Of a DNA stretch of 64,000 bases, positions 4,320 through 38,483 are shown piece by piece; position 1 is the stretch's first letter; every line of letters begins with the position of its first letter. The notes under the pieces were generated by a model that did no database searches, was not told the origin of the DNA, and saw only the letters and a list, made by a program, of their open reading frames with translations. A program made the translations under genes and the position numbers. Where the stretch lies: the sequence record NC_070950.1; one strand, 5' to 3'.

Positions 4320-4345
4320 ATAGACCTAGTTATAACTAGGTCTAT
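4320..4345. repeat. perfect 26-bp palindrome
   Basis: ATAGACCTAGTTATAACTAGGTCTAT equals its own reverse complement. Confidence 0.9.
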
Positions 4346-4350
4346 ATTAC
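4343..4350 (+). promoter_or_regulatory. phiKZ-type early promoter core TATATTAC
   Basis: Exact match to the early consensus known for phiKZ; AACATTTAGGA follows 14 nt later. Confidence 0.7.
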
Positions 4351-4384
4351 CTTTATGCCGAACTAACATTTAGGAATTAAAATC

Positions 4385-4972
4385 ATGATGAATCAATTGA
4401 AGGATTGGATTGACTACACCTCTTACTGGAATACGTATAACCGCGTTCTTCTTCGTAAAGGAGGGATGTACACCGAACAGATCGAACTGGAGCTCACCCC
4501 AATTAACGACGAGTGGGACGAAGTTAAACTCTGTAAAATCCGTAAGCATCGTACGAGCATGGGCCCGGGGGATAAAATTAGTCATCATCTCCATCCTGAC
4601 ATCTTTGCATTGATGGAAGAGAAGCTAGGATATCATTTAGCCCATTTTATCTTTCACTACGATATCTACACTAAGCTAACCAATTACGATGCGAGAAGAT
4701 ACTGGTACTTGCTTGATCGCTATGTCTTTAATGGTGGAGGTGGGATACCTCTGGTGTTGATAGATCCAAGCTTTGATTTGCTGAGAGAGGATTGGGCTAA
4801 AGGGACTTCCTCGGCTTACGCCGACGCTAAACAACGCATTATGGATAGATTGAACATAGGGTTGGATCAGGTAAACAATCTGAGTTTTTTCGGGGATTTA
4901 AGACGCTTGGACATTCACGATCACACACCATTTAGAGTGGGCGTGGCAACTTGGGTGGGGGATAAACGATGA
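4385..4972 (+). CDS. hypothetical protein
   Basis: TTAGGA SD; first gene after the early promoter. Confidence 0.8.
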   Translation: MMNQLKDWIDYTSYWNTYNRVLLRKGGMYTEQIELELTPINDEWDEVKLCKIRKHRTSMGPGDKISHHLHPDIFALMEEKLGYHLAHFIFHYDIYTKLTNYDARRYWYLLDRYVFNGGGGIPLVLIDPSFDLLREDWAKGTSSAYADAKQRIMDRLNIGLDQVNNLSFFGDLRRLDIHDHTPFRVGVATWVGDKR

Positions 4973-5388
4973 AACTCATTCATGGTAGAACTAGGTCGGT
5001 TATCCTCATAGGGAAATACGCCATAAAGCTCCCCTATTTGAAATCCTGGCCGTATTTCGTTAGAGGGTTACTGGACAACATGTTCGAGAAAAGCTATAAC
5101 CGATTCCCTAGTGAGTCATTGGCCCCTTTATTATTTTCTCTTCCTGGTGGTTTCTTAAACGTATACCCACGTTGTAGTGTAATAACCGATCCCAAAGACC
5201 CGCAACTTTGGAAACTATTCAAAAATCTTTACGAAGAGGATAACGAGTACATTTTAAATATCATAGAAGTCGCCGAGCCTTCCAACTTCGGTTATTATCA
5301 AGGTCGAATAGTAGCGATTGACTATGGCCATGGCCAACAGTACTTTTTGAACAAACGTATCGTCGAAGATGAATTGGGATTATTTTGA
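4969..5388 (+). CDS. minimal protein-kinase-like fold protein
   Basis: GRTRSVILIGKYAIKLP (beta1-3 with Lys), DNMFE, PSNFG, IVAIDYG (DFG-like). Confidence 0.6.
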   Translation: MKLIHGRTRSVILIGKYAIKLPYLKSWPYFVRGLLDNMFEKSYNRFPSESLAPLLFSLPGGFLNVYPRCSVITDPKDPQLWKLFKNLYEEDNEYILNIIEVAEPSNFGYYQGRIVAIDYGHGQQYFLNKRIVEDELGLF

Positions 5389-5438
5389 ATTTTTATCTAG
5401 TCAAGCGTGGTTTGGGCGGCTAAACCATAAGGAACGGT

Positions 5439-5684
5439 ATGAGAGATAATTTGGTAATATTGGGTAAGGGGTTCTATTTAGTAAGAACCCAGGCCGGTTT
5501 CAGAAAAGCGATTAAACATAGATTCTCTAATTCTCCGGATATCGCTGAAGAACGACCGTCCAATTATCCACGTTCGTACCCGGCCATTGTGTCCATATCG
5601 ACAGAATACAGGGGGTATTGGTATCCTAGTGTAAACTGGATCCCTTTAAACGACTTACTTGGTCAGATAAAGGAAAGTGAATGA
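5439..5684 (+). CDS. hypothetical protein
   Basis: AAGGA SD; no function recognised. Confidence 0.75.
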   Translation: MRDNLVILGKGFYLVRTQAGFRKAIKHRFSNSPDIAEERPSNYPRSYPAIVSISTEYRGYWYPSVNWIPLNDLLGQIKESE

Positions 5685-5950
5685 AATCGGAAATCATCGT
5701 TACCAGAACGTTCGCTCAGTTAAAAGAACTTCGGATAATGATCAGCCGTAAATTGGTTAAGTCGGCTTCTTTGGTTGAAACTACAGAGGGATGGTCGGTA
5801 GAGTTCAAAACAGAATACGGGGATAGAGTATTCTCTTCGTCAAAGAATGCGTACTATCCAAAGACCTTCAAAGGATTTACAGCACCCATCAAAATGTTGA
5901 GAAAGATGGGATTTGACGAAGTAAAGCTGGTATTTCTAAAGGCCAAATGA
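5681..5950 (+). CDS. hypothetical protein
   Basis: 4-nt overlap with the upstream stop; AAGGA SD. Confidence 0.75.
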   Translation: MKSEIIVTRTFAQLKELRIMISRKLVKSASLVETTEGWSVEFKTEYGDRVFSSSKNAYYPKTFKGFTAPIKMLRKMGFDEVKLVFLKAK

Positions 5951-5971
5951 TATTAATTTAGGAGAAATGAA

Positions 5972-6283
5972 ATGAAATTATTTCTGGTTCGTTCGTCCGA
6001 TAATCATGGGAAATACGAAAGATGGTGGGAATTGGTTGTTGCTGCTAAAGATGAGACGGAAGCAAAAGACATAACGTTCCCGCATCCTGATTTCGTTTCT
6101 GGCGCTTCAGTATTTGAACCAGTCCCTACTGGTGATAGTCATGGTTCGCTATCAGGTCTTCCTTATGGAGAAAAAGGCCGTGGGTATTGGTACCCTAACC
6201 GTGATAACCTCCATGTTATCTGTTTGGGCGAAACTCCTCTTACAGAGCCAGGAGCCATATCAGGGTTTTTCTACCACGCGTAA
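5972..6283 (+). CDS. hypothetical protein, paralogue of 12583..12885
   Basis: AGGAG SD; shares MKLFLV / LVVAA / HP / W..LH..LG blocks with 12583..12885. Confidence 0.75.
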   Translation: MKLFLVRSSDNHGKYERWWELVVAAKDETEAKDITFPHPDFVSGASVFEPVPTGDSHGSLSGLPYGEKGRGYWYPNRDNLHVICLGETPLTEPGAISGFFYHA

Positions 6284-6306
6284 CAAGCATCTTTAGGGGA
6301 AATCTC

Positions 6307-6633
6307 ATGAAAGTAACAATCCAAGTGCTGGAAGACAGAGAAGTCGATATTATCGAGGCCTTAGAAAAAAGTTTGTTCATCCCCCATTTCTATTTCGTGC
6401 ATCGGGGGCGGGATAAAGGAGAATTCTTAGGGGAGGATGACGATTCTATTTTGATCATCTCACAGGAGTTGGTTGATTGTTGTCCTGAACTGGTCGTATT
6501 GGAATGCGGGGATTTGGAAAAACTATGTTTCTCCCAACGACGCACCAAAACCGAAAAAGAGGTTATTATCGAATACCTCAAAGCCAATCGAGAAAAGATT
6601 ATCAAAGTCACTGACTTGCCGGGGTACTATTAA
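6307..6633 (+). CDS. hypothetical protein
   Basis: SD; TAATG coupling to the next gene. Confidence 0.75.
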   Translation: MKVTIQVLEDREVDIIEALEKSLFIPHFYFVHRGRDKGEFLGEDDDSILIISQELVDCCPELVVLECGDLEKLCFSQRRTKTEKEVIIEYLKANREKIIKVTDLPGYY

Positions 6634-7166
6634 TGACTGCTCGTTGGTTCGCAGGGGATTTCCATTTAGGAGATCCTTCTATTATCAAATACCGTAAACA
6701 GTTTAAAACGGTAAAAGAGCACGATGAATTTATCGCCGATACGATTTTGGTTAAGCCTCGTGATCACGACGTGTTAACCATCGTTGGCGACGGATTCATT
6801 AAACCCGAATCGCTGTTCATCCTGAAGAAATTCCCGTATAAGAAACATCTTATCCCGGGGAATCACTGTATGGAGAAAGGCGTTAAGGTTACCGATCTTG
6901 CTGCTTTCTTCGACGTTGTTACCGGATCGTTTAAATGGAAGAGTGGGTTCTTCGTATCCCATGAACCTCAGCATCCTAATCATCTCCGAGGTCGCATCAA
7001 TATCCATGCTCATTTGCATGATAAAGTGATCGAAGACGAACGTTATATCGGGGTGTCGTTAGAACAAACCGGCTATCGTTTAATCCATCACGATGAGATC
7101 TTATCTGGTTCTTATCGTACTTATCGCAAACCAACCCTTGAAGACCATTTACATTTAGGAGAATAG
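6633..7166 (+). CDS. calcineurin-like metallophosphoesterase
   Basis: Motifs GDFHLG, VGD, PGNH, SHEP, HAHLH. Confidence 0.88.
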   Translation: MTARWFAGDFHLGDPSIIKYRKQFKTVKEHDEFIADTILVKPRDHDVLTIVGDGFIKPESLFILKKFPYKKHLIPGNHCMEKGVKVTDLAAFFDVVTGSFKWKSGFFVSHEPQHPNHLRGRINIHAHLHDKVIEDERYIGVSLEQTGYRLIHHDEILSGSYRTYRKPTLEDHLHLGE

Positions 7167-7168
7167 CC

Positions 7169-7465
7169 ATGGCTCGTAAACCTTCTACCGTAGGCGAGAT
7201 TATTAAGAAAGAGTATCTCGAACCGATGAACATGAGTATGATGGAACTCTGCCGTCGGACTCATTCAAGCAATGCCGCTATTTCCCGTCTGCTTAGCGGG
7301 AATACTCGTCTGAGTATTGAGATGGCGTTTAAACTCGCTAAGCTCTTTAACACAACTGAAGAGTTTTGGTTGAATCTTCAACGTCAAGTAGATCTTTACG
7401 AAGCTAAGCGAGATAAAGAGCTTAAGGCGACGTTAAAGAAAATTGTTCCCATTAGTAAGGTGTGA
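7169..7465 (+). CDS. higA: HigA-family antitoxin / XRE HTH protein
   Basis: TVGEIIKKEYLEP...ISRLLSGNTRLSIEMAFKLAKLFNTTEEFWLNLQRQVDL. Confidence 0.88.
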   Translation: MARKPSTVGEIIKKEYLEPMNMSMMELCRRTHSSNAAISRLLSGNTRLSIEMAFKLAKLFNTTEEFWLNLQRQVDLYEAKRDKELKATLKKIVPISKV

Positions 7466-7812
7466 TAATGAGTCCGTTTAATATTTATTTTTCTGCTTCT
7501 CCCCTGGGGTCCGCTATAGGGTTAGCGATCTTGCTAGTCCTTGGGTGGTTTTTTATTTACCGCAGCCCTACAGCGATTAATCAAGTTATCGGTAAACAGA
7601 AACGCGTCTACGTTGTTTTGTTCGTCCTGGTATTTTTTATCGGGAGTTGTTTTAATATAGGTACTCGGCAAGCTGAGCTTAATCGTTCTCAGTTCGACGC
7701 CCAGATGAACACTGAGATCATCAAGAAATCACCTACCTCCACGGAAGTCTTCGATGCCCGTGGTAACTTTAATCAAGCGTTAGATAAAGCAAAAAAGGAA
7801 AATGAACAATGA
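7462..7812 (+). CDS. membrane protein coupled to the SPFH gene
   Basis: Two TM segments and a polar helical tail; overlaps both neighbours by 4 nt. Confidence 0.75.
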   Translation: MIMSPFNIYFSASPLGSAIGLAILLVLGWFFIYRSPTAINQVIGKQKRVYVVLFVLVFFIGSCFNIGTRQAELNRSQFDAQMNTEIIKKSPTSTEVFDARGNFNQALDKAKKENEQ

Positions 7813-8675
7813 AGAAACTTTTCTCAATTGTGGGATTAGTGATGATTGCAACTTTACTCTCTGGATGCGGTCAAATCGTAGAACCTGGTTTTAAAGCCAA
7901 GTTCCTTTCTTCCAGTGGTTACAGTAACGAGATCAAGGAGCCGGGTAAATATCAAGTTTGGTGGGGCGAGAAGTTGATTAAACTTGATACCTCGACCAAA
8001 GCGATATCCATTCCTCTCACTGTTAAGATGGCGGATGAAATGGATTTATCCTTTAGCGTTAACTTCCGTACCCGAGTCGGGGGTAACGATAAAGTCCTGA
8101 ACGCCATGTTTAACGACATTCGGCCTCAGGATACTGATAAGGGTCTGATCATCTCCTTAGATCAGGTATTCTCGGTTTACGGTAATGACGTAGTGAGTAA
8201 CGTTGCTCGTTCCGTAGTGGGGAAATACAAAGTCAGTGAGGTCTCTAAAAACTACGACACAATCAACGAGCAGCTTCAGGCTAAGTTAATCGAAGCGATG
8301 AAGAACAACCCGCTGGAAGTGTCCAACGTGACCGTCGCTAACATTACCTGGCCTAAAGTCATTACTGACGCCATCGAAAAGCAACAAGAACGTGAACTGG
8401 CAATCAAGACAGAAGAAAACCAGCAAGCTATAGAAATGGTCAAACGCACTAACCAGCTCAAACTCGCCGAAGCTGACCGAGAGATCGAACTCACTCGAGC
8501 GAGAACCCTGCGAGATCAGAACGCCATTACCGCCGATGGATTAAGTGATAAACTCATCGCTTATAAAGCGTTAGAGGTTCAACAATCCATGACAGATAAC
8601 AAGTCGGCGGTGTTTGTCCCTTATGAAGCGTTCAATGCACCCGGATTGTCCAACCGAATCTTTAGTGCCAAATAA
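7809..8675 (+). CDS. SPFH/Band 7 domain lipoprotein
   Basis: Lipobox LLSGC; VEPG...PG.Y; ARSVVGKY; VSNVTVANITWP..ITDAIE; C-terminal coiled coil. Confidence 0.85.
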   Translation: MKKLFSIVGLVMIATLLSGCGQIVEPGFKAKFLSSSGYSNEIKEPGKYQVWWGEKLIKLDTSTKAISIPLTVKMADEMDLSFSVNFRTRVGGNDKVLNAMFNDIRPQDTDKGLIISLDQVFSVYGNDVVSNVARSVVGKYKVSEVSKNYDTINEQLQAKLIEAMKNNPLEVSNVTVANITWPKVITDAIEKQQERELAIKTEENQQAIEMVKRTNQLKLAEADREIELTRARTLRDQNAITADGLSDKLIAYKALEVQQSMTDNKSAVFVPYEAFNAPGLSNRIFSAK

Positions 8676-8683
8676 TTAACAAT

Positions 8684-8713
8684 TAATCTGGTTGGATAAG
8701 TCCAACCAGATTA
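8684..8713 (+). terminator. intrinsic terminator-like hairpin
   Basis: 13-bp stem TAATCTGGTTGGA-taag-TCCAACCAGATTA followed by CTTTT. Confidence 0.75.
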
Positions 8714-8729
8714 CTTTTACTTTAGGAGA

Positions 8730-9323
8730 ATGATGATGATCAACTGCTTAGAACCTAACGAATTCGTTCAGTTTAAAGAACAGTGGGATAAATATCTCGA
8801 GGAGGGTCTTCCCGGACTCGATGAAAGAATGAAGGGTCCGATGCTGATCCTGAACGCAATACCTGGGGTAGCGACCCGCTTTTGTTGTTCCGGTCATACC
8901 TTTGAAGAAAGGTTATCATCCCACCCGACCAAAGCGTATTCTCGAGTGCAGAAAAGGAACTTCATTTTTGTCGTTGAAGAAGGTCATGCCGATATTTTCT
9001 TTGCGTTTGAGATACTCTTCAAATTATTGAACAAAGACGAGTTTAGTTTTTGCCGGCCTTCTTTAGAAACCACTCTGCTCAAGAAAAACTTTGGTGAGTC
9101 GGAAACCTATCCGGTTTGGGTATTCGAAATGAATTGGGTTTACGAACTCACCGAGGAAGAAAAAATAAAGGGAAGGGATAAGACCCAGAAAGAACTTTGG
9201 GAGAAACTCCTCAGAGGACTGTTCATGATCACCGATCCAAAGGAACGCCATAAACACCGGGATATTCTGACCGAACCCTATTTCGACCAACCAGGACTTA
9301 TTAGGAAAACACATAATGTTTGA
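8730..9323 (+). CDS. hypothetical protein with a TYW3-like motif
   Basis: GLDERM...LNAIPGVATRFCCSGH resembles the Tyw3 iD..i..lN...T.SSCSGR motif. Confidence 0.45.
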   Translation: MMMINCLEPNEFVQFKEQWDKYLEEGLPGLDERMKGPMLILNAIPGVATRFCCSGHTFEERLSSHPTKAYSRVQKRNFIFVVEEGHADIFFAFEILFKLLNKDEFSFCRPSLETTLLKKNFGESETYPVWVFEMNWVYELTEEEKIKGRDKTQKELWEKLLRGLFMITDPKERHKHRDILTEPYFDQPGLIRKTHNV

Positions 9324-10425
9324 TATCGGCATCGTCGTTGGTAAATTTGCCCCTCTCACCCAGGGGCACATCAACCTCATCACCCAAGCCTCCCTCCAGG
9401 CTAAGAAAGTTATCGTTGTGTTAAGTCATGACAGTCGCTGGTTAGCGCAACAATGTCCTCGTGATCAGAAGGCGTTGACGTTCACTAACCGTCTTCGTTG
9501 GTTACAGCAGCATTACGCCGATTCTGACCACATTGATATTAAATATATCATCGAAGATGACATCCCGGAATTCCCCAACGGATGGAGCGCTTACTGTAAC
9601 CTCCTCAGGAAGATCTACACTGAGGAACAGCACAAGAACTATAAAGGAATCGGATCAGTCGACAACACTCGTCGGATTGCTCAAACCGTGGCCATTTTCA
9701 GTAGTGAAATCGATTACGATAAAGGTTACGAGGAGCATCTTCCTGAAGTCAGTCACGTCGTCGTTGATGCGCATCGTACAGCGGTTCCCATTAGTGCGAC
9801 TAAAATTCGTGAGAATCTTTACGCCAACTGGGAATACCTCCCTTCTATTGTTCGTAAGGACTACACCAAACGGATTGTCATCCTCGGCCAGGAATCTTGC
9901 GGTAAAAGCGTCATGGTCAAGAATCTGGCTAAGATGTTTAATACGTCCTGGGTAGAGGAGTACGGTCGGACGTATTGTGAAACTGAGCTCTGTGGTTCAG
10001 AATCGACACTCCGTAGTGATGATTACCCGATCATCGCTTATCGCCATAAGGAACTGGAAATCCAAGCAATGCGTTCGGCTAACCGCATTTGCATCGTGGA
10101 TACGAACGCATTCATTACCGAGTACTACCATCGGTTGTATGAAGGCAAACCTAATCGTATCGTCTCTGCTATAGCAGCTGAGGAAAACTACGATCTGGTC
10201 ATCGTGCTCGAACCTACGGTGGAATGGGTTGATGACGGCCTTCGTAGTAATCCCGAAAGACAACGGACGACCGAATTATTTAACCTCATGAGTCTGGAGT
10301 TCCCTAACCAGTTCCCGGAAGGAAGAACGTTCCATATTTCTTCCCCTGATTACAAAGTTAGGTTCGACCAGGCTTACGAAATTATCAAAACCTTCACTCA
10401 GCGTGTTAACTCAGGTGAATTTTAA
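9316..10425 (+). CDS. nadR: NadR-like NMN adenylyltransferase / nicotinamide riboside kinase, without HTH
   Basis: VGKFAPLTQGH, ISATKIR, Walker A GQESCGKS, EEYGRTY, IVDTN, WVDDGLR. Confidence 0.92.
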   Translation: MFDIGIVVGKFAPLTQGHINLITQASLQAKKVIVVLSHDSRWLAQQCPRDQKALTFTNRLRWLQQHYADSDHIDIKYIIEDDIPEFPNGWSAYCNLLRKIYTEEQHKNYKGIGSVDNTRRIAQTVAIFSSEIDYDKGYEEHLPEVSHVVVDAHRTAVPISATKIRENLYANWEYLPSIVRKDYTKRIVILGQESCGKSVMVKNLAKMFNTSWVEEYGRTYCETELCGSESTLRSDDYPIIAYRHKELEIQAMRSANRICIVDTNAFITEYYHRLYEGKPNRIVSAIAAEENYDLVIVLEPTVEWVDDGLRSNPERQRTTELFNLMSLEFPNQFPEGRTFHISSPDYKVRFDQAYEIIKTFTQRVNSGEF

Positions 10426-11121
10426 ATGAAAGAACTTTTTAGCGTAATCTATACTGATTTCCAGAGCGGATGGAGTCGTAAGGAATGGCTGTGGTTAGTC
10501 GTAGCCGTCTCGGCTGTTGTAGTTGGGAGTATTTCCGCTTCGCCACTGGAATTCTGGGCGGGGATATTCAACGTCGTCTGCGTTATTCTTGTTGCTAAAG
10601 GCCGACTCTCCAATTACTATTGGGGGCTATTAGGGGTGGTTCTCTACGCGATCGTTTCCTACAAGCAACAACTCTACGGCAACATGGCGCTTAACGTCAT
10701 TTACTTCGGATTCCAATTCTGGGGTATTTACGAATGGCGTAAAACACTGCTGAATAAGACTGATGCTGGCGTTGACGTATCCGTTAGGCGATTGTCACTC
10801 CTTCAGTTCCTTCAGATGACGTTCGTTGTTTTGGCAGGGACCTTTGCAGTAAGCTTGTTCCTTCGTCATATCGGGGATAGTTCACCCGTATTAGATGCGT
10901 TTACGATGGTAGCGAGCTTAATCGCTATGGGCTTGATGGTTAAACAGTATTCCGAACAATGGTTACTCTGGATACTGGTCGATATCGCTTCTATTTACAT
11001 GTGGGTCATTCCTGCTTTAGACCAGCCTGGTTCTTGGTCCATGGTAGCAATGTGGACGGTCATCACCGGTAACGCGCTGTACGGCGCTTACATGTGGTTT
11101 GTTGTTAAGATAAATAAATAA
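10426..11121 (+). CDS. pnuC: PnuC nicotinamide riboside transporter
   Basis: Multi-TM; LVAKGRLSNYYWG, QFWGIYEW, LDAFT, EQWLLWILVD; abuts nadR. Confidence 0.92.
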   Translation: MKELFSVIYTDFQSGWSRKEWLWLVVAVSAVVVGSISASPLEFWAGIFNVVCVILVAKGRLSNYYWGLLGVVLYAIVSYKQQLYGNMALNVIYFGFQFWGIYEWRKTLLNKTDAGVDVSVRRLSLLQFLQMTFVVLAGTFAVSLFLRHIGDSSPVLDAFTMVASLIAMGLMVKQYSEQWLLWILVDIASIYMWVIPALDQPGSWSMVAMWTVITGNALYGAYMWFVVKINK

Positions 11122-11150
11122 ATAATTCCGACAATAGAGGATAAAATATC

Positions 11151-11852
11151 ATGCGTAAGAACTATGACATTAATGCCACTTCAGACGACGTCTTCTTTAA
11201 TCACTCTAAATCATTTAAGCTGGTGAGAAAAGCGATTAAGAAGATCGGTTCAGCAAAATGGGAGGGGGTTTTTAGTGACCCTACCCAAAATGCTGCCCGT
11301 GGGTATGATGAAGAGCGATTTGATAACGTCCTCCGCGCCATGTATTCTGAAGATTTGGCGAGGACCTTGGATTTTGCTATTCATCGCAACGAGATTGCTC
11401 GAATCGATATCGCCATTATGATGATGAAACCTGAAACCAAAATCGATTACCATTTTAGGCACGACATCCCCTATCGTCAATGGGGATTTCTTAGTTTCCG
11501 ATCTGATTTAACAATTACCAGCGCGGATCAGCTCGACAACAATCCCTTTTTCTTCACTACGCTCTTGCGGGAGCTCAAAAGAGCGGGGATTTACGATTAC
11601 AACGTGAACGCGATCAGCGAGCTTTATCAACTTGTACATCTGGCCTCTATCGCGCTGTCGTACACTGGTTTGAGTGGATTGGGGGAATCGGATTCCTACC
11701 AGAACGCAATCGGTGTCGCCATGCAGGTAATTCGTCGTTGGGGCGCGGGAGAGAGTTCTGAAGTTATGAGTGATCTTGATCGAGCCACTCAGATTTGGTC
11801 GCCTTCGGAATCGGACTATGTTAAGTTTTACGAAGAATTGATCATCGGATAA
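11151..11852 (+). CDS. hypothetical protein
   Basis: GAGGA SD; 233 aa. Confidence 0.8.
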   Translation: MRKNYDINATSDDVFFNHSKSFKLVRKAIKKIGSAKWEGVFSDPTQNAARGYDEERFDNVLRAMYSEDLARTLDFAIHRNEIARIDIAIMMMKPETKIDYHFRHDIPYRQWGFLSFRSDLTITSADQLDNNPFFFTTLLRELKRAGIYDYNVNAISELYQLVHLASIALSYTGLSGLGESDSYQNAIGVAMQVIRRWGAGESSEVMSDLDRATQIWSPSESDYVKFYEELIIG

Positions 11853-11894
11853 CGAAGCGTAATTAAATTTAATAGTATGGTCAGTCGACCTAGG

Positions 11895-11921: not shown

Positions 11922-11951
11922 TTCCTTTCGTAAATATCGGAGAAATAAAAA

Positions 11952-12467: not shown

Positions 12468-12474
12468 GTCAACC

Positions 12475-30622: not shown

Positions 30623-30628
30623 TAAAGT

Positions 30629-31009: not shown

Positions 31010-31085
31010 TTCGCTATTCTCTGAATTAGTTAGTAATAAACGATCATAGCATTTTAGACTTTCGACACATAGAAGTTTTCAGTTC

Positions 31086-31093
31086 TATATTAC
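31086..31093 (+). promoter_or_regulatory. phiKZ-type early promoter
   Basis: Exact cTATATTAC; AACCTATC follows 14 nt later. Confidence 0.75.
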
Positions 31094-31131
31094 TGTTATG
31101 TAAACACAACCTATCATTAAGGAAAGGCATC

Positions 31132-31617
31132 GTGAAACTCGTTAATCAAAAAGTTTATATTGTTAAGCCAGGCGATACGCTGTCAGAAATAGCAAACCAT
31201 TTTTGTGGGAATCCTGCTATCGGATACGATATAGCTGAGGACAACGGCATTATCAACGCCGGACTCATCTATCAAGGGCAAAGAATCTGGATAAGGGAGG
31301 GATTTCTAAAGGAAGAATTTAAGGGCTCTCCTAATACCCAACCCAAAGAAGAACCTTTCAGAAAAGGTCAGGTCGTTCATATCGCTCAGTCCGGCGTTCT
31401 AACAAGACCAAAACTTACCGACTGGGTTGAAAGTATCGATCATCTAATCGATGGCTGTTTTTTAATTGTACAAGACCAAGATCAGAATCGCTCTTCGGTC
31501 CTGGTCCAAGATAACAAGAAGCAGTTTTATTACTTCGATCTGAACGAATCAAGAGAAGTGGTTAGGGTTCAAGGAGCGATAGAAATCTGCCCTGGTCGTT
31601 TTATGGCGTTAGGTTAA
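31132..31617 (+). CDS. LysM-domain protein with no signal peptide
   Basis: YIVKPGDTLSEIA...IAEDNGI.NAGLIYQGQRIWI. Confidence 0.88.
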   Translation: MKLVNQKVYIVKPGDTLSEIANHFCGNPAIGYDIAEDNGIINAGLIYQGQRIWIREGFLKEEFKGSPNTQPKEEPFRKGQVVHIAQSGVLTRPKLTDWVESIDHLIDGCFLIVQDQDQNRSSVLVQDNKKQFYYFDLNESREVVRVQGAIEICPGRFMALG

Positions 31618-31634
31618 ATCCAACTGAGGGTTAC

Positions 31635-32030
31635 ATGAAAAAGATTATAATCTACACAGCCCCGAGGTCAAGCTTCTTAGGGGCGGGACTCAAAGAAAAA
31701 CTTTTAAAGGAACTGGAAGTGACTTTCGGTTATCTCTTTGATGTACAGGAGATAACCGAAATGGGGATTGAACTAACGGCGCACGAATTCATCATTTCCG
31801 ATGAAGGATTCAATATTCTCGCTAAGGAGTGGGAGAATAAGTTTGAGGATCCGGAGATTCACAAGATGGAGGACGTTTACATGTTCCCGTCTGAGTTACG
31901 TAAAGCAAGCTTGGATAAGTTGAAAGGGGTTAGGGAACTCTTTACGATTAGAGTCGCAACCTTCCTTTCATGCTTACCAGAAGAAACGGCAGTTTTAATC
32001 GAAGCTCAACCCGTCGAAGAAGACGAATAA
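31635..32030 (+). CDS. acidic hypothetical protein, tandem paralogue 1
   Basis: GAGGG SD; aligns with the next ORF. Confidence 0.75.
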   Translation: MKKIIIYTAPRSSFLGAGLKEKLLKELEVTFGYLFDVQEITEMGIELTAHEFIISDEGFNILAKEWENKFEDPEIHKMEDVYMFPSELRKASLDKLKGVRELFTIRVATFLSCLPEETAVLIEAQPVEEDE

Positions 32031-32047
32031 CTTTAGGATTTAACATC

Positions 32048-32425
32048 ATGTATGAGGTTACTGTTTACCATTTCTCCAGACAAGAACTGGAAAAGAAAGA
32101 TCAGGATTTCTTCGAAGACCTGACCAAGAACGAAGGTTGGGTAGAAGACATCGAAGATATTGAAATGGCACTGGGTTCCAGGGAGGGTTGCATTGAAGGT
32201 CAAGAATTCAGATTACCCGTCTCTGCTTTAGATATCCTGGAAATGAAATGGGAGGGGCGTTTTGACTCTGGCATTTGCATGTGTTCCGCCATTTACTATT
32301 TCTCGCCTGAATGCATTGAATCCGTATGTCGCGATCTTTCCGATCATGGTACTCGGGAGGCCGCTCTCTTAGCAGAGTACCTGCAGGGCATCCCCGATAC
32401 CGAAATCGTCGTTATCGAAATCTAA
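32048..32425 (+). CDS. acidic hypothetical protein, tandem paralogue 2 (start moved from 31970)
   Basis: TTTAGGATTTAACATC leader before the ATG at 32048. Confidence 0.75.
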   Translation: MYEVTVYHFSRQELEKKDQDFFEDLTKNEGWVEDIEDIEMALGSREGCIEGQEFRLPVSALDILEMKWEGRFDSGICMCSAIYYFSPECIESVCRDLSDHGTREAALLAEYLQGIPDTEIVVIEI

Positions 32426-32452
32426 TTGCTGTGTAGTTGTGGTAGTTCTTTT

Positions 32453-32477
32453 GGGGGCCTTCGGGCCCTCCTTTTTT
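32453..32477 (+). terminator. intrinsic terminator with a cUUCGg loop
   Basis: GGGGGCC-ttcg-GGCCCTC followed by CTTTTTT. Confidence 0.8.
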
Positions 32478-32489
32478 AAGGAAAGTGAA

Positions 32490-32930
32490 ATGCGGGAAGA
32501 CAGAAATATTTATCGTAACACAGCTTATATCAACGATCGTTATGAGAGGATAGGTGATGCAGTAGAGGTAACACTATTTTCTTTTTCGACGTTTGAAATA
32601 GAGCAGAAAATCGTGTTTGAGTGGGTCAAGAAAAATCCCGCTATCAAACTCGAACTTTATCGAGGTCTGAGTGATAAAGATTCACCAGTAAATATCTGCG
32701 GGTCCGTTACTAATATAAGGATCAACCCCCTAGATTTCAAAGTCACCGGTACACTTCGACCCGAAGGAAGAATGCGCAAAATACTGGAAGATACCATCAA
32801 TCGGCATCAGCCTGTCACCATTAACATGCGAGGGATATTTGATTTTAGACATTCCGTTTATCGTTGTACCGAAATCAAAGGTCTGGTGCTAATGTCTGAC
32901 TTTAGTGCCTATCGTAAAAGGAGTATTTAA
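32490..32930 (+). CDS. hypothetical protein, possibly a degenerate prohead-protease-like fold (start moved from 32439)
   Basis: AAGGA SD; NICGSVTN...VTGTLRPEG...INMRG. Confidence 0.4.
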   Translation: MREDRNIYRNTAYINDRYERIGDAVEVTLFSFSTFEIEQKIVFEWVKKNPAIKLELYRGLSDKDSPVNICGSVTNIRINPLDFKVTGTLRPEGRMRKILEDTINRHQPVTINMRGIFDFRHSVYRCTEIKGLVLMSDFSAYRKRSI

Positions 32931-32950
32931 CTTCCATAATTTTTTAAATC

Positions 32951-32958
32951 GATATTAC
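32951..32958 (+). promoter_or_regulatory. early-promoter variant
   Basis: TTTTTAAATc-GATATTAC. Confidence 0.55.
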
Positions 32959-33018
32959 CACTGTGTCTCAAAATAAAACTTTTTAGGTTGTTTTAACATC
33001 ACTTAGGAGTACGCCCGT

Positions 33019-33393
33019 ATGCGTTATCAACATTTTTCTATCGTCTCTTCCAAAGAAGCATTTTCCATTCGTCTTTCTTACATCCTGCAACATCTGAACA
33101 AAACAGAAACTCAGCGCTCTATCGCGGAGTATTGTGGGGTGAGCACGAGTACCATCTCCGCCATCTGCAACGAGCACGTCCAGTATGTATCCCTCAATAC
33201 GCTGATGAAAATCGCGGATAAACTGAAACTCAACTACGAGGTTGTCTTTAAAGGCAATCGCGGTAAAGTGAGTAACTTTGTTACTGTTGAATCCGCCGTG
33301 GATTACATGAAGCTCGGCAAGCTGAACCCCGTTCGTAAAAATGTGATGAAGGGTAGCTCCCCTGCATTTAAAGGACGGGTGGCGACGCATTAA
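33019..33393 (+). CDS. XRE/Cro-C1 HTH protein
   Basis: TQRSIAEYCGVSTSTISAICN...SLNTLMKIADKL; AGGAG SD. Confidence 0.85.
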   Translation: MRYQHFSIVSSKEAFSIRLSYILQHLNKTETQRSIAEYCGVSTSTISAICNEHVQYVSLNTLMKIADKLKLNYEVVFKGNRGKVSNFVTVESAVDYMKLGKLNPVRKNVMKGSSPAFKGRVATH

Positions 33394-33398
33394 TCATG

Positions 33399-33422
33399 GT
33401 GGGGGTCCGCAAGGGCTCCCAC
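33399..33422 (+). terminator. GNRA-loop hairpin terminator
   Basis: GTGGGGGTCC-gcaa-GGGCTCCCAC with 2 G-U pairs; T-rich downstream. Confidence 0.7.
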
Positions 33423-33454
33423 GCTATTTATCAATTTATTTTTTAGGATAAAAC

Positions 33455-34012
33455 ATGACCATTATCGTAGGGGTTGTAAAAGAAAAATCGTTAAGTGCGG
33501 ACCGTTATATACTGGATTATAAGCAGATCAACAAAACAGTGTCTTCGGTTTCACGCTACACCGAGAGTAAATTAAAAATATCTCCGGACAATCATTTTTG
33601 TTATGTCTTCTGTGGCGAACAAAAAGAAGAGATTGTTCCATTGGTTCTTAACTATTTACTCAGATTCGAAAAAGGTCTGGTAAAGGAAGACGAATTTATT
33701 CATTGCGGACTTAAATCCTGCGACTCCCTCATTGTGATGTCCGCGAGACATTTTTATTCAATTCAGTTAAATGAAAAACAGGGGGTTTTAGAAGTTCAAA
33801 TTCGTTTGGATGGCGCGGTCACCTATCCTTTTTTAAACAACCATATGGTCGCCGGACTCGATCTCCCAGGGGAAGTAATTCGTCAAGCACTGATGGAAGC
33901 CAATCTCATTCTCCACACCGATGAAAATGAAGTTGATGTAGTCCATCAAAAAGACCTCACTCTTATTAAGAAAGCCACCAAAAAGGAAATTAAAAATGCT
34001 CTTTTATCTTAA
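33455..34012 (+). CDS. Ntn-hydrolase (HslV/proteasome beta-like) protein
   Basis: M-T1-IIVG...SAD15R...SK38L...CG53 resembles the T1/D17/K33/G47 pattern. Confidence 0.5.
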   Translation: MTIIVGVVKEKSLSADRYILDYKQINKTVSSVSRYTESKLKISPDNHFCYVFCGEQKEEIVPLVLNYLLRFEKGLVKEDEFIHCGLKSCDSLIVMSARHFYSIQLNEKQGVLEVQIRLDGAVTYPFLNNHMVAGLDLPGEVIRQALMEANLILHTDENEVDVVHQKDLTLIKKATKKEIKNALLS

Positions 34013-34454
34013 CAAGCGGGTTATCGTTGACAGCGTAGCGAACATCTTTATGTTAGCGGACGATACTCCTCACGTCGAGTTCTTATTGGATGGCGACAAA
34101 CGATGGGCTTTCATTCCCTATCATGAAAATAACGGCAGTACGTTATCTGCGGCTATCTCAGTGAATGAGCACGGTGTTTGTTATAATGCGCATTTCAACT
34201 ATAAAACGTTAAGTCTCGATCGTCGTATTCCGTTACCCTCTAATTTGTTAAAAGCCTTTCAAACAGGGGGAGATTCCGACTACTGTAACAACATGCACGT
34301 CGCTAAGGCCGCTTTCTATCACTATAACTGTACCTTTGACGAATTCCAAGCATTGCTAAATAAATCAGGCCGGGAGTACAAAATGTTTGATTTATTAGCG
34401 GTCTCTAAAAGACTTAAGACGATGCAGCCGGAACAATTTAACTGGGTTATTTAA
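33996..34454 (+). CDS. hypothetical protein
   Basis: AAGGA SD; overlaps the upstream gene. Confidence 0.75.
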   Translation: MLFYLNKRVIVDSVANIFMLADDTPHVEFLLDGDKRWAFIPYHENNGSTLSAAISVNEHGVCYNAHFNYKTLSLDRRIPLPSNLLKAFQTGGDSDYCNNMHVAKAAFYHYNCTFDEFQALLNKSGREYKMFDLLAVSKRLKTMQPEQFNWVI

Positions 34455-34492
34455 AACCAAGATTCCTATTATACGTTAAAGAATTTTGGATC

Positions 34493-34534
34493 TATATCAC
34501 CGTCTTGATGCACTAACCATAATCTTTTTAGGAG
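34493..34534 (+). promoter_or_regulatory. early-promoter variant plus conserved leader
   Basis: cTATATCAC-N14-AACCATAATCTTTTTAGGAG. Confidence 0.65.
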
Positions 34535-34544
34535 TATTAACATC

Positions 34545-36122
34545 GTGAACGTTCGTGGCGTAAAAGTAAAAGCAGAAACCCGTCAAATTATTGATAACAC
34601 CGTAGAGCTCGTTGCAACCGCGGTAACCTCGACCATGGGCCCTAACGGCAAGCTGGTTGTTATTGACGAAACGGGTAATCCTAAAATGACCAAGGATGGG
34701 GTGACAGTAGCGCGCTCTATCCGTTTGGATGATCGGGCAATGGACATCATCGCCAAGATGATCACCGAAGCCTCGATCAAAACGGATGCCGAATGTGGCG
34801 ATGGGACCACCACCACTGTATTCTTAACAAGAGCGTTTTATAACGCCTTTAAAGATAAACTGGATTTCATGACCAAACGCCGGGTGGAAGAGTTAACCAA
34901 AGAAACGATCGAAATGCTCAAAGGAATGACGAAGGTTATTTCTCTTGATAGCCCAGTCCTTCACAATCTGGCGTTAACAACCAGTAATAACGATCTGGAT
35001 ATCGTGGATAAACTCTACGATATCTTTAAGACCATACCTGATCCCATGATTGATTATCGTCGGGGTGTAACAGGTATTGACGAGATCGAATACAGTAAGG
35101 GCAAGGAATTCACAGGCGGGTACGCGCACCCTACTTTCACTAAAGATGGAAGTGGTAGCCCGATTACGATCGAATCGGGTTATGCGTGCATCTTTGAAGG
35201 GAAGTTCAGTATTCCAGATGACGAGTCGGAATTCCTGAAGCTCTTCGATGAGATCACTGAAAGGGGATATCGTCAGACTGTTGTTATCGCACGTGAATTC
35301 GACGAACACACCCTGATGGTGATGAACAAAATGAATCACGTTATGCTGACGCAGAAACTGGTGGAGGAACCGGTTTTCATTCCCGTGCGGGTTCAGGCTA
35401 TCGGAACAGCGGGAGTGGGGATCATTGGAGATATTGCAACGGTACTGGGATTAAACCAGGATGTGGACTATTCAGGTTGGAAGTCTCGCAACTATGAAGT
35501 ACGCCCCATTGAAAACGTTGTAGTGAAAGGCGCGCTATTCTTTGTGGGTAGCATGTCCGATGATGTCTCGGAACGTACAGTAAAGCGTATCGCGCAAATT
35601 AAAGATCAAATCGATAACTTGCCAGCTGCTCAGAAACACACGCCTTTGGCGAAGATCCTGAGACACCGTATCTCTACTCTGATGGGTAACCGAGTGACTG
35701 TAACCGTTGGAGGAGAAACCGCTTCCGACATCAAAGAACGACTGGATCGATTTGAAGACGTCGGTCGGGCTATCGCATCAGCGTTAACTAACGGCGTCCT
35801 TCCGGGCATTGGTTATTCATTGGCTTATGTTGGTAGTGAGCTGGTGAAGAAATATCCTGACGATTCTATAGTGAAACTGTACGCCGATGTATTGGGCGAG
35901 CAGCTTCACATGTTGATGGGTCGGGAATTCAATGATCCTGAATTAGTCTATGTCAATCTGGCTACTGGGGAAACCGGTAAGCATCCTCAAGACATCAACG
36001 TCTGGGATGCGCAGTTAGCCACAGTCACTGCGTTAAGGGCTGGTGTCAGCACTGCTATCTCTTTGGCGAGCACCGATACGTTAATTATCGGTAGTCGTGC
36101 AGGTGGTGCGGATATTCCCTGA
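34545..36122 (+). CDS. groEL: phage chaperonin, GroEL-like
   Basis: TMGPNG, TKDGVTVA, GDGTTT, TVGGET, GVLPGIG; 525 aa. Confidence 0.93.
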   Translation: MNVRGVKVKAETRQIIDNTVELVATAVTSTMGPNGKLVVIDETGNPKMTKDGVTVARSIRLDDRAMDIIAKMITEASIKTDAECGDGTTTTVFLTRAFYNAFKDKLDFMTKRRVEELTKETIEMLKGMTKVISLDSPVLHNLALTTSNNDLDIVDKLYDIFKTIPDPMIDYRRGVTGIDEIEYSKGKEFTGGYAHPTFTKDGSGSPITIESGYACIFEGKFSIPDDESEFLKLFDEITERGYRQTVVIAREFDEHTLMVMNKMNHVMLTQKLVEEPVFIPVRVQAIGTAGVGIIGDIATVLGLNQDVDYSGWKSRNYEVRPIENVVVKGALFFVGSMSDDVSERTVKRIAQIKDQIDNLPAAQKHTPLAKILRHRISTLMGNRVTVTVGGETASDIKERLDRFEDVGRAIASALTNGVLPGIGYSLAYVGSELVKKYPDDSIVKLYADVLGEQLHMLMGREFNDPELVYVNLATGETGKHPQDINVWDAQLATVTALRAGVSTAISLASTDTLIIGSRAGGADIP

Positions 36123-36131
36123 TGCGTTTTA

Positions 36132-36149
36132 GGGGAAGGAAACTTCCCC
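36132..36149 (+). terminator. GAAA-loop hairpin
   Basis: GGGGAAG-gaaa-CTTCCCC after groEL. Confidence 0.55.
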
Positions 36150-36164
36150 ATTGGGAGAATTTTT

Positions 36165-36422
36165 ATGGGCGTTAACACTTCGTCAATTAAAAATTCTAAT
36201 AATAGACAACATAATAATTACAGCGATTCATCCTCCGCTCCGATTCAGTTGGATCGTTCGGGGGAAATTGTCGACGCCAGAACTAAGCTAACAGTTACTG
36301 GTGAAATTCCTCTTCGAAAGTTACCCACTTTCTCAAACCCACCGCAAAGAACAATAAGAGACGATAAAAAACCTTCATCACTCTGGGGGATGGTTAGAGC
36401 TCTGTTCTTTGTATTCATGTGA
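36165..36422 (+). CDS. hypothetical protein, low-complexity N-terminus and hydrophobic C-terminus
   Basis: GGGAG SD; fills the gap after groEL. Confidence 0.55.
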   Translation: MGVNTSSIKNSNNRQHNNYSDSSSAPIQLDRSGEIVDARTKLTVTGEIPLRKLPTFSNPPQRTIRDDKKPSSLWGMVRALFFVFM

Positions 36423-36425
36423 TAC

Positions 36426-36455
36426 TATTCCTCTACCCACGTGGGTAGAGGAATA
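36426..36455. repeat. perfect 30-bp palindrome, probable terminator
   Basis: TATTCCTCTACCCAC|GTGGGTAGAGGAATA; T tracts downstream. Confidence 0.85.
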
Positions 36456-36490
36456 ATAATACTTTTTTATTTTTTAAGGTTATCTCACTC

Positions 36491-37078
36491 ATGGCTAAAA
36501 TTTATTTCTACTTCTCTTCGATGAATTCCGGGAAGACTACCGGTTTGTTACAATCAGCCTACAACTACACTGAAAGAGGGATGTCCGTCTTACTTCTTAA
36601 GCCTAAACTTGATAATAGAGAAGGAGAAGACGCGATAATTAAATCAAGGATAGGATTAGAAAGCGAATGTGTTTTCATTCCTGATAACGACGATGAATTA
36701 GTCGATCTTATTCATAATAACAAAGGTGTTTCGGCTATATTTATCGACGAGGTTCAATTCGTCTCCCCGCATACACTGGCCGGACTAATGACCTTGTGCG
36801 ATAATTACGACATTCCTCTTCTCTGCTATGGTCTCCGGAACGCCTATGACGGAAAAGGGTTCCCGGGCTCTGATTTCTTATTGCGTCACGCTGATAAACT
36901 GGTTGAATGCAAATCGATTTGTTGGTGTGGTAAAAAGGCGACCCACAACATGATGGTTGTCGATGGGAAGGTGGTAAGGGAAACCACGTCAGGGGGAAAT
37001 ATGGTTGTCGGCGGTAATGAACTGTATCACGCCGTTTGCAGGTATCATTTCTTCGAAGGCAAATACAAAGAAGATTAA
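36491..37078 (+). CDS. tdk: thymidine kinase (TK1 type)
   Basis: FSSMNSGKTT, FIDEVQF, CYGLR, CWCGKKA, AVCRYH. Confidence 0.95.
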   Translation: MAKIYFYFSSMNSGKTTGLLQSAYNYTERGMSVLLLKPKLDNREGEDAIIKSRIGLESECVFIPDNDDELVDLIHNNKGVSAIFIDEVQFVSPHTLAGLMTLCDNYDIPLLCYGLRNAYDGKGFPGSDFLLRHADKLVECKSICWCGKKATHNMMVVDGKVVRETTSGGNMVVGGNELYHAVCRYHFFEGKYKED

Positions 37079-37098
37079 CTTATATTTATTTTGAGATC

Positions 37099-37106
37099 TA
37101 CATTAT
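37099..37106 (+). promoter_or_regulatory. early-promoter variant
   Basis: TATTTTGAGATc-TACATTAT. Confidence 0.5.
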
Positions 37107-37156
37107 CATGGTGTAAGCATAGTACGTTTTTATTTTCCTTTTTAGGAGCTAACATC

Positions 37157-37651
37157 ATGATGAGTCAACTTGTAAATATTCTGAGTGAGCACAGATCAGC
37201 GTTTATTTGGCCTTCCAACATCCTGCAGTTAGAAGATGAATACTTCTATCTCTCGGTCAAGATTACGGAGAGTGGTGTGGTCAAATGTATCTTCCGGAAC
37301 AAACTCACCAAAGACGTCCGTAAGTTCGACTTCTCTGACATCATTTTTGATAAAGAGGGGTTATGGGATTACTTCAATGCGATCGGCAAAGAAGTCTACG
37401 CCATTGGGATTGACTACGGTAAAGGGTTCCAGCTGAAGATGTTGTTTGAGCCGATTAAGGCGATGATCACCGATAAGGCGCATAAGCCTTATAATGGGCA
37501 TCTTCCAAGAGACGTAAGAGCACCACTGTTTTCCCCGGTTAACGCCCGCAGTATTTATCTCGACGAAAACGGCGAAGTCACACTCGATGGCTTCGAATGG
37601 GCTTCTCGTGGATTGCAATTAAAAATCATCGAAGAGCTCTTAATTAGCTAA
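37157..37651 (+). CDS. hypothetical protein (start moved from 37091)
   Basis: TTTTAGGAGCTAACATC leader before the ATG at 37157. Confidence 0.75.
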   Translation: MMSQLVNILSEHRSAFIWPSNILQLEDEYFYLSVKITESGVVKCIFRNKLTKDVRKFDFSDIIFDKEGLWDYFNAIGKEVYAIGIDYGKGFQLKMLFEPIKAMITDKAHKPYNGHLPRDVRAPLFSPVNARSIYLDENGEVTLDGFEWASRGLQLKIIEELLIS

Positions 37652-37694
37652 TTAATGTTATGCTAATTAGCTCATCACTGTAAAGAGGATTAAG

Positions 37695-38171
37695 ATGAAA
37701 AACCTGCTCGATTTAGTGCTCAAATTTTTCATTGGGCTTAACCCAGGCCTGGCCGTACTGATGGAAGGTGGTTCGATCGTCAATGTGGTTGAAAAACCAG
37801 AAATCGATCGTTACGCCGGTGATATCATGCGTCCGGACGGCACAACCAAGCTTCTGTCGGTAACCTGGAAACCGGGTACATTTAAAGGCGTGTTCGGCCT
37901 CGATCCAGCCTTTGCTCCCGTCACGCAGGATGAAGCAGGCACAACCGAAGGTATCTTCCTGAAGACCGACGGCACGCCTTACTTTGCGTTGACGGCTGAA
38001 AATGCTACCGAAGCCAAAATCGAAGAAATCCTCGGATATGCTTTCGAAGAAGGCACGGTCGCAGTAGACACCGAAACCAAAAAGGTCAGCTTCGCAACGT
38101 CTACTATCGTTGCTGAAGTCGATCTGGTCGTTATCGAAGCGGCTCCGGTGGCCGACGGCCAACTGCCGTAA
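37695..38171 (+). CDS. acidic, codon-biased protein, possibly late/virion
   Basis: GAGGA SD; TATG (late-promoter-like) upstream; biased codons. Confidence 0.75.
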   Translation: MKNLLDLVLKFFIGLNPGLAVLMEGGSIVNVVEKPEIDRYAGDIMRPDGTTKLLSVTWKPGTFKGVFGLDPAFAPVTQDEAGTTEGIFLKTDGTPYFALTAENATEAKIEEILGYAFEEGTVAVDTETKKVSFATSTIVAEVDLVVIEAAPVADGQLP

Positions 38172-38179
38172 TAAGTAAC

Positions 38180-38213
38180 CTACTCCTACGCCCTTAACGG
38201 GGCGTAGGAGTAG
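38180..38213 (+). terminator. CTCCTAC/GTAGGAG-family hairpin
   Basis: 14-bp stem CTACTCCTACGCCC-ttaacg-GGGCGTAGGAGTAG. Confidence 0.8.
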
Positions 38214-38240
38214 TTCGTTAATTATAACTGACTTTTTTAA

Positions 38241-38248
38241 TATATAAC
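38241..38248 (+). promoter_or_regulatory. early-promoter variant
   Basis: TTTTTTAA-TATATAAC, then the TTTAGGA leader. Confidence 0.45.
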
Positions 38249-38276
38249 CACCAACGTTCATTTAGGACATAACACC

Positions 38277-38483
38277 ATGTTGTATGACGCAATTGAAGTT
38301 TGTTTTATCGTAATTTCCATTCTTTCCTTTATCTGGGTAATGAAGAAGAAAGGAACCGGGGCGATGTTAATTATTGCGTTTTCTATTGTTGTCGTGGCAG
38401 GATGTCGTTATCAAGATAACGCCGATACCGAACAAGCTTTAGAACATCCAAAATATACCAAATCTAACTGCGGCTGCTTATAA
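38277..38483 (+). CDS. small membrane protein with an internal lipobox
   Basis: TM segment, then MKKKGTGAMLIIAFSIVVVAGC. Confidence 0.65.
   Translation: MLYDAIEVCFIVISILSFIWVMKKKGTGAMLIIAFSIVVVAGCRYQDNADTEQALEHPKYTKSNCGCL

Follow-up and report, generated by a model that had tools for sequence, protein, structure and literature searches.

The early promoters of phiKZ-like jumbo phages are well described. Phage phiKZ has 28-32 of them, which are read by the virion polymerase and combine an extended -10 element with an upstream T-rich block (PMC8244752, PMC10914365). Published early-promoter strings include TATATTAC for phiKZ, WTTTYAAACCTACATTATY for EL, TBYAWWWWWTTTCARRYAKATATTATYWAAGTGWA for N1M2 and ...TTTRARR-BTATATTACDWHDGTG for 201phi2-1 (PMC7058600); the early promoters of OBP, EL and N1M2 are predicted ones. 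In 201phi2-1 the motif lies ~10 bp upstream of mapped starts (PMC11512511). In phiKZ the early-promoter motif has been reported for the primary start site of PHIKZ054, the 5' untranslated regions (5'UTRs) are mostly 31-40 nt long (PMC8244752) and a conserved terminator motif, BCCYCCCCHWWDGGGRRGGBYTTAT, has been defined (PMC10914365). Here we describe a comparable pattern in a stretch of 64,000 nucleotides from record NC_070950.1 (the window; positions refer to it unless given as record positions), which belongs to Klebsiella phage Miami. Terminator-type hairpins, a 46-nt promoter motif and leaders recur in this DNA, and we consider, with a probability of about 0.8, that this is how a phiKZ-like jumbo phage borders its transcription units, with a terminator, an early promoter and a ribosome-binding leader. 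The parts are of kinds known in the phiKZ family and are newly recognised in the Miami group.

Positions 4000-14000 of the window matched Miami (MT701590) 128000-138000 with 100% identity in a megablast search, and the whole window corresponds to MT701590 124001-188000, + strand. Miami is a jumbo phage of 253 kb. Its annotated beta-type RNA polymerase subunits (gp232, gp233, gp299 and gp300), its PhuZ tubulin and its nuclear shell protein (chimallin; gp281, phrog_4795) identify it as a phiKZ-like, chimallin-encoding phage. The announcement of the Miami genome contains no promoter analysis (PMC7844079). Record positions 74-164 kb form a single block of ~150 small + strand genes, mostly of unknown function, and this block contains the interval 4320-38279 in which the pattern was noticed. 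We rebuilt the Miami genome from six annotated stretches and compared it with five whole relatives, namely KPN8, BUCTxx100, YC1, phiKp_32 and VB_ZK_P1, which share 85-91% of Miami at an identity of 92-96%.

The exact 8-mer core TATATTAC was rejected as evidence on its own, since its 4 matches against 2.1 expected were not significant. Alignment of the candidate sites revealed a conserved stretch reaching far past the 8-mer core. A weight matrix of 46 nt (-26 to +20), seeded with ten sites, was used instead, with a threshold of at least 12 bits and with Markov shuffles for the chance estimate. The seed matrix detected 23 sites at or above 12 bits in the whole Miami genome, all 23 on the + strand, where ~1 was expected. 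The converged matrix detected 24 sites genome-wide with leave-one-out scores of 12-41 bits, and every one of the 24 is intergenic and has the same orientation as the next annotated gene. The consensus reads roughly A-N2-T-rich-AG-N2-C TATATTAY Y-N4-TG-TA. Its invariant or nearly invariant positions are A -15, the T-rich run at -12 to -7, A -5, G -4, C -1, the core T-A-T-A-T-T-A-Y and Y +8, while T +13 and G +14 are present at 21/24 sites. In orthologous promoter pairs from the five relatives, positions -15 to +7 diverged by 1.2-1.4% and the motif as a whole by 4.2%, as against 13.3% at four-fold degenerate sites. These data establish a real, oriented and intergenic motif of 24 copies that is under purifying selection. 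The 90-kb variable block, 36% of the genome, contains 12 of the 24 promoters; one site is located upstream of the chimallin gene gp281 and another upstream of the PhuZ tubulin gene. From the first base of the core to the ATG the median is 53 nt, and the 5'UTR would be ~39 nt long with a transcription start near G +14. This length and the 24 copies agree with the 31-40 nt and the 28-32 early promoters of phiKZ (PMC8244752).

Comparison with the published consensus sequences revealed that the Miami motif aligns position by position with those of N1M2, OBP, 201phi2-1, EL and phiKZ (PMC7058600). In common with the early promoters of the phiKZ family, it has the core TATATTAC or TATATTAT, an upstream T-rich block with a TTTCA-like element, a GTG/TGTA block 4-5 nt downstream, 20-35 co-oriented copies before small-gene operons, one copy before chimallin, and an expected 5'UTR of ~30-40 nt. 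It differs from them in that position -1 is an invariant C, where N1M2 and OBP have A, and in that A -15 and AG -5/-4 are fixed. By analogy with these phages, an intrinsic-terminator hairpin, often from a single sequence family (C-rich arm, 4-nt loop, G-rich arm, TTAT or T run), would end the upstream operon. The 46-nt promoter, with TG(T)A at about +13 to +16, would then restart transcription, most likely at or near G +14, and would probably be recognised by the multisubunit RNA polymerase packaged in the virion. The resulting 5'UTR of ~25-50 nt would end in a strong translation-initiation region, TTTAGGAG...AACATC ATG, which is also used before many promoter-less genes.

The motif might instead be a promoter for a non-virion phage polymerase of the middle or late phase, or for the host sigma-70 polymerase. 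Stretches 4321-4348 and 31062-31091 do pass a loose sigma-70 scan, and the core is preceded, at 18-19 nt, by a TTnnACA block. Sigma-70-like sites are, however, at background level (32 and 33 found, 35 and 29.7 expected, respectively), the invariants C -1, A -15 and G +14 are not sigma-70 features, and the predicted Miami promoter motif is not sigma-70-like. The motifs published for middle and late promoters in phiKZ and 201phi2-1 differ from it as well (the middle motif being TACT-centred), and the transcript maps of both phages assign the matching motif to early genes. A promoter for another polymerase thus appears unlikely. Some points do weigh against a virion-polymerase early promoter at a transcription-unit boundary. 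The ACA/TT block at -25 to -19 loosely resembles a -35 box with a spacer of 18-19 nt, so that the host polymerase may still use these sites. We infer the polymerase, the early timing and the exact start site in Miami from homology only. The matrix was refined on its own matches, the unbiased results being those of the seed stage and the leave-one-out scores, and the three to five lowest-scoring sites (12-16 bits) could include a false positive. No start-site signal was readable in the 24 runs with the stretch, all of them assembled metagenome contigs, and four RNA-type runs over 30600-36599 gave fragments at depth 2-12 without usable ends.

Nine motif sites are present in the window, all on the + strand, as are the hairpins and leaders that accompany them. 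The first (4317-4363, core TATATTAC at 4343-4350, before gp148; leave-one-out 16.4 bits) is combined with a terminator-type hairpin located after gp147 (4320-4345, 11 pairs, dG -15.8, GenBank terminator at record 128319-128348), the 3' arm of which overlaps the upstream part of the promoter and runs directly into the core. The site at 12507-12553 (core TTTATTAT at 12533-12540, before gp163; 31.2 bits) is kept in 5 relatives and is preceded by a terminator hairpin of a conserved family, ACTCCTACTCCC-GATA-AGGGAGTAGGAGT followed by TTATT (12478-12509, dG -25.8), a family that recurs in 5/5 relatives. The site at 25598-25644 (core TATATTAC at 25624-25631, before gp185; 33.2 bits) follows a terminator hairpin after gp184 that spans 25562-25607, with 14 pairs at 25562-25593, a T10 run and dG -27.5. 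Four promoters are without a hairpin. These are 31060-31106 (core TATATTAC at 31086-31093; 37.4 bits) in the divergent intergenic region before the LysM gene gp198, 32925-32971 (core GATATTAC at 32951-32958; 35.1 bits) before the HTH regulator gene gp202, 34467-34513 (core TATATCAC at 34493-34500) before gp205, which encodes a GroEL-like chaperonin, and 37073-37119 (core TACATTAT at 37099-37106; 32.5 bits) before gp208. The promoter at 34493 is the weakest, at 12.1 bits, and is identical across all relatives.

The original prediction, made from the letters of the window, had named eight promoter sites and had quoted sequences that we recovered at exactly the positions given. Its sites at 4343, 12533, 25624, 31086, 32951, 34493 and 37099 were borne out, but the one at 38180-38277 was not. 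A terminator hairpin after gp209 is located there (38180-38213, 14 pairs, a variant of the conserved family), together with a Shine-Dalgarno sequence but without a canonical promoter behind it; in 38200-38280 the best matrix score was -9.9 bits (about -10) and the invariant C -1 was missing. Two sites absent from that list were found by the matrix, at 15940-15986 (core TGTACTAT at 15966-15973, before gp168; 24.8 bits) and at 52517-52563 (core TACATTAT at 52543-52550, before gp227; 21.1 bits).

All four hairpins, at 4320, 12478, 25562 and 38180, were found by a terminator scan and are annotated as GenBank terminators, with dG values of -16 to -28; a clear T run lies behind that at 25562 only. 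The conserved family, ACTCCTACTCCC-NNNN-GGGAGTAGGAGT followed by TTAT, has six near-identical copies in Miami in addition to variants, and many copies in each relative. Further members are located at record positions 85167, 101258, 115059 and 201054, and one between the convergent genes gp213 and gp214 (39927-39963, no strand assigned) is likely a bidirectional terminator. The family resembles the phiKZ and 201phi2-1 terminators in its C-rich 5' arm, 4-nt A/T-rich loop, G-rich 3' arm, TTAT or T run, near-identical repeats and partly bidirectional placement; it differs in its stem, ACTCCTACTCCC/GGGAGTAGGAGT, and the terminators here are predicted from sequence. Miami has 48 annotated terminators, only part of which belong to the conserved family and most of which are not followed by a promoter. 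Of the 24 promoters genome-wide, 10-11 have a strong hairpin whose end is no more than 60 nt upstream, as have 3/9 in the window. Hairpin and promoter are therefore not a fixed composite unit, and they co-occur because both sit at operon borders. Thus, of the fixed order of hairpin, T tract, core and leader that had been predicted to recur, the parts are real, but a clear T run was found at 25562 alone and the hairpin at three of the nine window promoters. Past the window end (window 74619), the motif site at record 198619-198687 is 120 nt away from the gene downstream and has an annotated terminator ~40 nt behind it; this site could give a short transcript or serve as an attenuator.

The leaders behind two of the promoters, AACCATAATCTTTTTAGGAGCAT at 12555-12577 and its twin AACCATAATCTTTTTAGGAGTAT at 34515-34537, match at 22 of 23 nt. 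The 20-nt identity reported for them earlier is correct, and GTG AAC follows both. The relatives have a similar pair, which in phiKp_32 and YC1 differs at two or three positions, and no breakpoint was found at 12555 or 34515 in the five-relative alignment. A recent exchange was considered as the origin of the identity and was rejected, as the same leader pair occurs in the relatives and neither leader has a breakpoint. The two leaders look like old shared promoter-leader subtypes, and the promoter-leader pair at record 87007 and 213027 is similar in the same way. Promoter 213027 has two versions among the six genomes, one of which matches promoter 161099 (window 37099) at the variable positions, TACATTAT CATG G; the versions could reflect conversion between promoter copies. 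A distance of exactly 14 nt between core and AAC had been noted at 4343, 12533, 31086 and 34493 and holds at all four. Genome-wide, AAC lies at +22 from the core in 7/24 promoters and at +17 in 6/24, as against 0-3 at other offsets, which is a real tendency, though a weak one.

The largest repeat family in the window is a translation-initiation region, TTTAGGAAnTAACATCATG, with 7 copies, and the most enriched intergenic words are TTTAGGA, T runs and hairpin arms. TTTAGGA had been regarded as a component of the recurring cassette. This was ruled out by the location of five of the seven TTTAGGAAnTAACATCATG copies at promoter-less junctions, and TTTAGGA...ATCATG is a general translation-initiation consensus. 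The earlier reading of the remaining parts as terminator hairpin, early promoter and leader is supported by the motif statistics, by conservation and by the published phiKZ-family consensus. For the Miami group, this provides a usable map with 24 candidate early promoters, together with a conserved family of terminators and a consensus for translation initiation, which aids annotation, phage engineering and the choice of regulatory parts.

A second described system to which the Miami pattern may be compared is the promoter-early-stem-loop (PeSL) cassette of T4-type phages. Both run from stop codon through hairpin, early promoter and Shine-Dalgarno sequence to start codon, both occur in a variable block of small genes of unknown function, and the overlap of hairpin and promoter at 4320-4350 is as in one PeSL subclass. 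Miami differs in that its promoter is not sigma-70-like, a hairpin accompanies only ~40% of the promoters, the copies number 24 vs ~50, the conserved span is ~46 nt and not ~100 bp, and the sites are not associated with the genes that close relatives have gained or lost. The original prediction had proposed PeSL-like units that bound exchangeable modules, in which copies of hairpin, promoter and leader recombine and exchange the genes between them, possibly via mini-circles. It had known of nothing comparable in phiKZ-like phages; the promoter and terminator motifs of these phages are in fact well described, but a shuffling role is not. The presence of 12/24 promoters in the variable block would be in keeping with such mobile cassettes, whereas the occurrence of a close upstream hairpin at 10-11 of 24 promoters only is not.

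We determined the breakpoints of Miami against the five relatives, counting insertions, deletions and replacements of at least 30 bp. The 196 unique breakpoints were concentrated in record 78-164 kb. As many as 108/196 were within 30 nt of a gene edge, while 9/196 were that close to a promoter and 22/196 to either a promoter or an annotated terminator. Record 74-164 kb has 155 junctions, and a breakpoint occurred at 6/12 promoter junctions and at 66/143 others (odds ratio 1.17, p = 1.0), a test with little power against a small effect, as the variable block has only 12 promoter junctions. When promoter and terminator junctions were taken together, the values were 17/28 vs 55/127 (p = 0.14). 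Our gene calls matched 57/65 annotated starts, with stop positions exact, and the junction statistics thus carry some noise. Out of 58 clean gene gains or losses, 8 had a promoter inside or within 80 nt of the differential segment, and 4 of these 8 were TnpB elements; the comparable figure for phi1/RB49 is 10/14 (PMC2839356).

A few individual events do look PeSL-like. An insert of 684 bp in VB_ZK_P1, at Miami record 217849-217910, is flanked by a 62-nt repeat consisting of terminator hairpin and T run and has its own promoter; phiKp_32 has a replacement of the block 112719-115097, which lies between two promoters; at promoters 128343 and 155086, the core is the exact point from which some relatives are homologous again; and the version of promoter 213027 that matches 161099 would fit ectopic conversion. 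These few events do not exceed the base rate. It had been set beforehand that breakpoints unrelated to cassette positions would speak against shuffling, and no association between the two was found. That promoter junctions mark the sites of gene gain and loss among the five relatives is not supported, and we regard PeSL-like mobile cassettes as a decidedly improbable explanation of the pattern.

The clean deletions in the relatives were joined at 15-20 nt of Shine-Dalgarno/spacer/ATG microhomology, TTTTAGGAAyTAACATCATG, and not at promoters, which speaks against PeSL-like exchange. Such junctions were TTTTAGGAA(T/C)TAACATCATG at record 142859/145069 (window 18859/21069), TTTAGG(A/G)GAAAT..ATGAAA at record 129980/130292 (window 5980/6292) and GGAGAATAAA(T/A)AATG at record 214383/214816. 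The shared translation-initiation consensus acts as the recombination point in these deletions. Homing endonuclease genes make up several of the 1-1.5-kb insertions found in the relatives, which also argues against PeSL-like exchange. HNH genes are inserted at Miami record 34005, 160491 (window 36491) and 192613, a LAGLIDADG gene at record 148035 (window 24035) and a NUMOD1 gene at record 250532. At window 36491 (record 160491-160522), KPN8, BUCTxx100, phiKp_32 and VB_ZK_P1 have a 1.0-kb HNH gene between a terminator and the thymidine kinase (tk) gene, bordered by a 32-nt repeat of the tk start. In this group, promoter cassettes do not organise the gene turnover of the variable block, which stems from selfish genes (TnpB and homing endonucleases) and from microhomology at the starts of genes. 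A further difference among the genomes is a 1.39-kb segment of Miami at record 235456-236844, which is missing from KPN8, BUCTxx100 and YC1; it is located in a 1.4-kb gap between gp282 and gp283 without annotated gene.

Three of the promoter-associated breakpoints share a single cause, namely TnpB elements. Miami gp287, annotated as a putative transposase (record 238488-239755), is a TnpB protein with the domains OrfB_IS605, Cas12f1-like TNB and HTH_OrfB_IS605 (PF01385, PF07282 and PF12323). The six genomes hold seven TnpB copies with 68-80% amino-acid identity, KPN8 and YC1 having none. In addition to the Miami copy, those at VB_ZK_P1 82177, phiKp_32 147036, phiKp_32 119897 and EL 41045 lie behind a promoter core. 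In four copies the ATG is placed exactly 27 nt after the first core base, the matrix scores being 18-34 bits and the cores GATATTAT, TATATTAT, TACATTAT or TATATCAT. Three of these four are at different orthologous promoters (Miami 238481, the VB_ZK_P1 counterpart of 38452 and the phiKp_32 counterpart of 107038), for which empty forms exist in sister genomes, and the fourth is a 1392-bp insertion carrying its own promoter. Pseudomonas phage EL, which belongs to a different genus, has a TnpB of 52% identity directly behind the early-promoter-like CCATTTTTGAACC TATATTAT; this site scores 12.5 bits with the Miami matrix, and the TnpB ATG lies 38 nt after the core start. Altogether, 5/8 copies in the seven genomes, EL included, follow YATYAT of a promoter core and 3/8 do not. 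The remaining three copies of the six genomes are located elsewhere; among them, a VB_ZK_P1 copy replaces 214 nt in the metallophosphatase gene gp154 (window 6794-7007, record 130794-131007) and another VB_ZK_P1 copy is present at the gp211 start (window 38499/38500), shortly after 38180-38277.

At two of the TnpB insertions the last six core bases are repeated at the right end, another copy has a ~10-nt repeat, and at one copy 18 nt of the empty site were lost. The target motif may be the 3' end of the core or a sequence that overlaps it. About 110 nt past the tnpB stop are conserved in 8/8 copies, with a predicted multi-helix fold and compensatory changes. An Rfam scan of the element gave no family match; the modelled fold of this ~110-nt right end is as expected for a guide RNA. 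The phage copies resemble IS200/IS605 TnpB elements in their domain set, a ~110-nt right end of predicted structure, diverged copies at differing sites and, for 5/8 copies, a short fixed left motif. They differ in that the left-flank motif is a promoter core, the gene thus lying 27 nt (38 nt in EL) behind it, and in the 6-nt flanking repeat at two insertions, which is unexpected for that family; no TnpA was seen beside any TnpB copy.

The immediate 3' position of 5/8 TnpB copies relative to the core could be taken to mean that the core is kept mainly as a landing site (target-adjacent motif) of TnpB and is no promoter at all. We consider this scarcely credible, as 23/24 Miami sites are without an element, KPN8 and YC1 have ~23-24 motif sites and zero TnpB, the conserved stretch of 46 nt reaches past the core in both directions, the sites always point towards the gene behind them and the same motif has been mapped as a promoter in other phages. 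With the motif taken as an early promoter, its core may, as a tentative and rather less likely than likely proposal, be a preferred TnpB landing site in chimallin-encoding jumbo phages. The element would insert immediately 3' of ...ATTAT, the working initiation region of its left end would make tnpB an early gene, copies would pass from one co-infecting genome to another by RNA-guided cutting of empty promoters, and the spacer behind the core would be hypervariable because a promoter could change there alone and so avoid being cut. If so, the promoters would be insertion hot spots by way of a guided nuclease and not by PeSL-type recombination. A literature search for TnpB at phage promoters yielded nothing relevant. 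The location of TnpB behind a phage promoter core in two genera, taken with the hypervariable spacer described below, would represent a natural case in which an element with an RNA-guided nuclease has adapted to a transcription signal of a virus.

The spacer, positions +8 to +11 after the core, comprises the most variable positions near the promoters, with a pooled divergence of 19.5%, compared with 4.2% for the remainder of the motif and 13.3% for four-fold degenerate sites. It changes blockwise. In 11 promoter-by-relative pairs at least 3 of the 4 bases were changed, where ~1 was expected, and single-base changes were fewer than expected. The pairs are not independent because the relatives share ancestry, and we estimate that seven or eight events occurred separately. 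The spacer may vary through a simple lack of constraint with multi-base mutation, promoter conversion, scars of element insertion, or escape from TnpB cutting, which would make it the seed beside a target motif that is unable to change. The association of TnpB with promoters and the hypervariable spacer could matter more than the promoter map itself. At window 52543 the spacer (52551-52554) reads CTGA, CAAG, AGAA or TAAA among the six genomes, with identical flanks, and further examples are located at 4351-4354 and 31094-31097.

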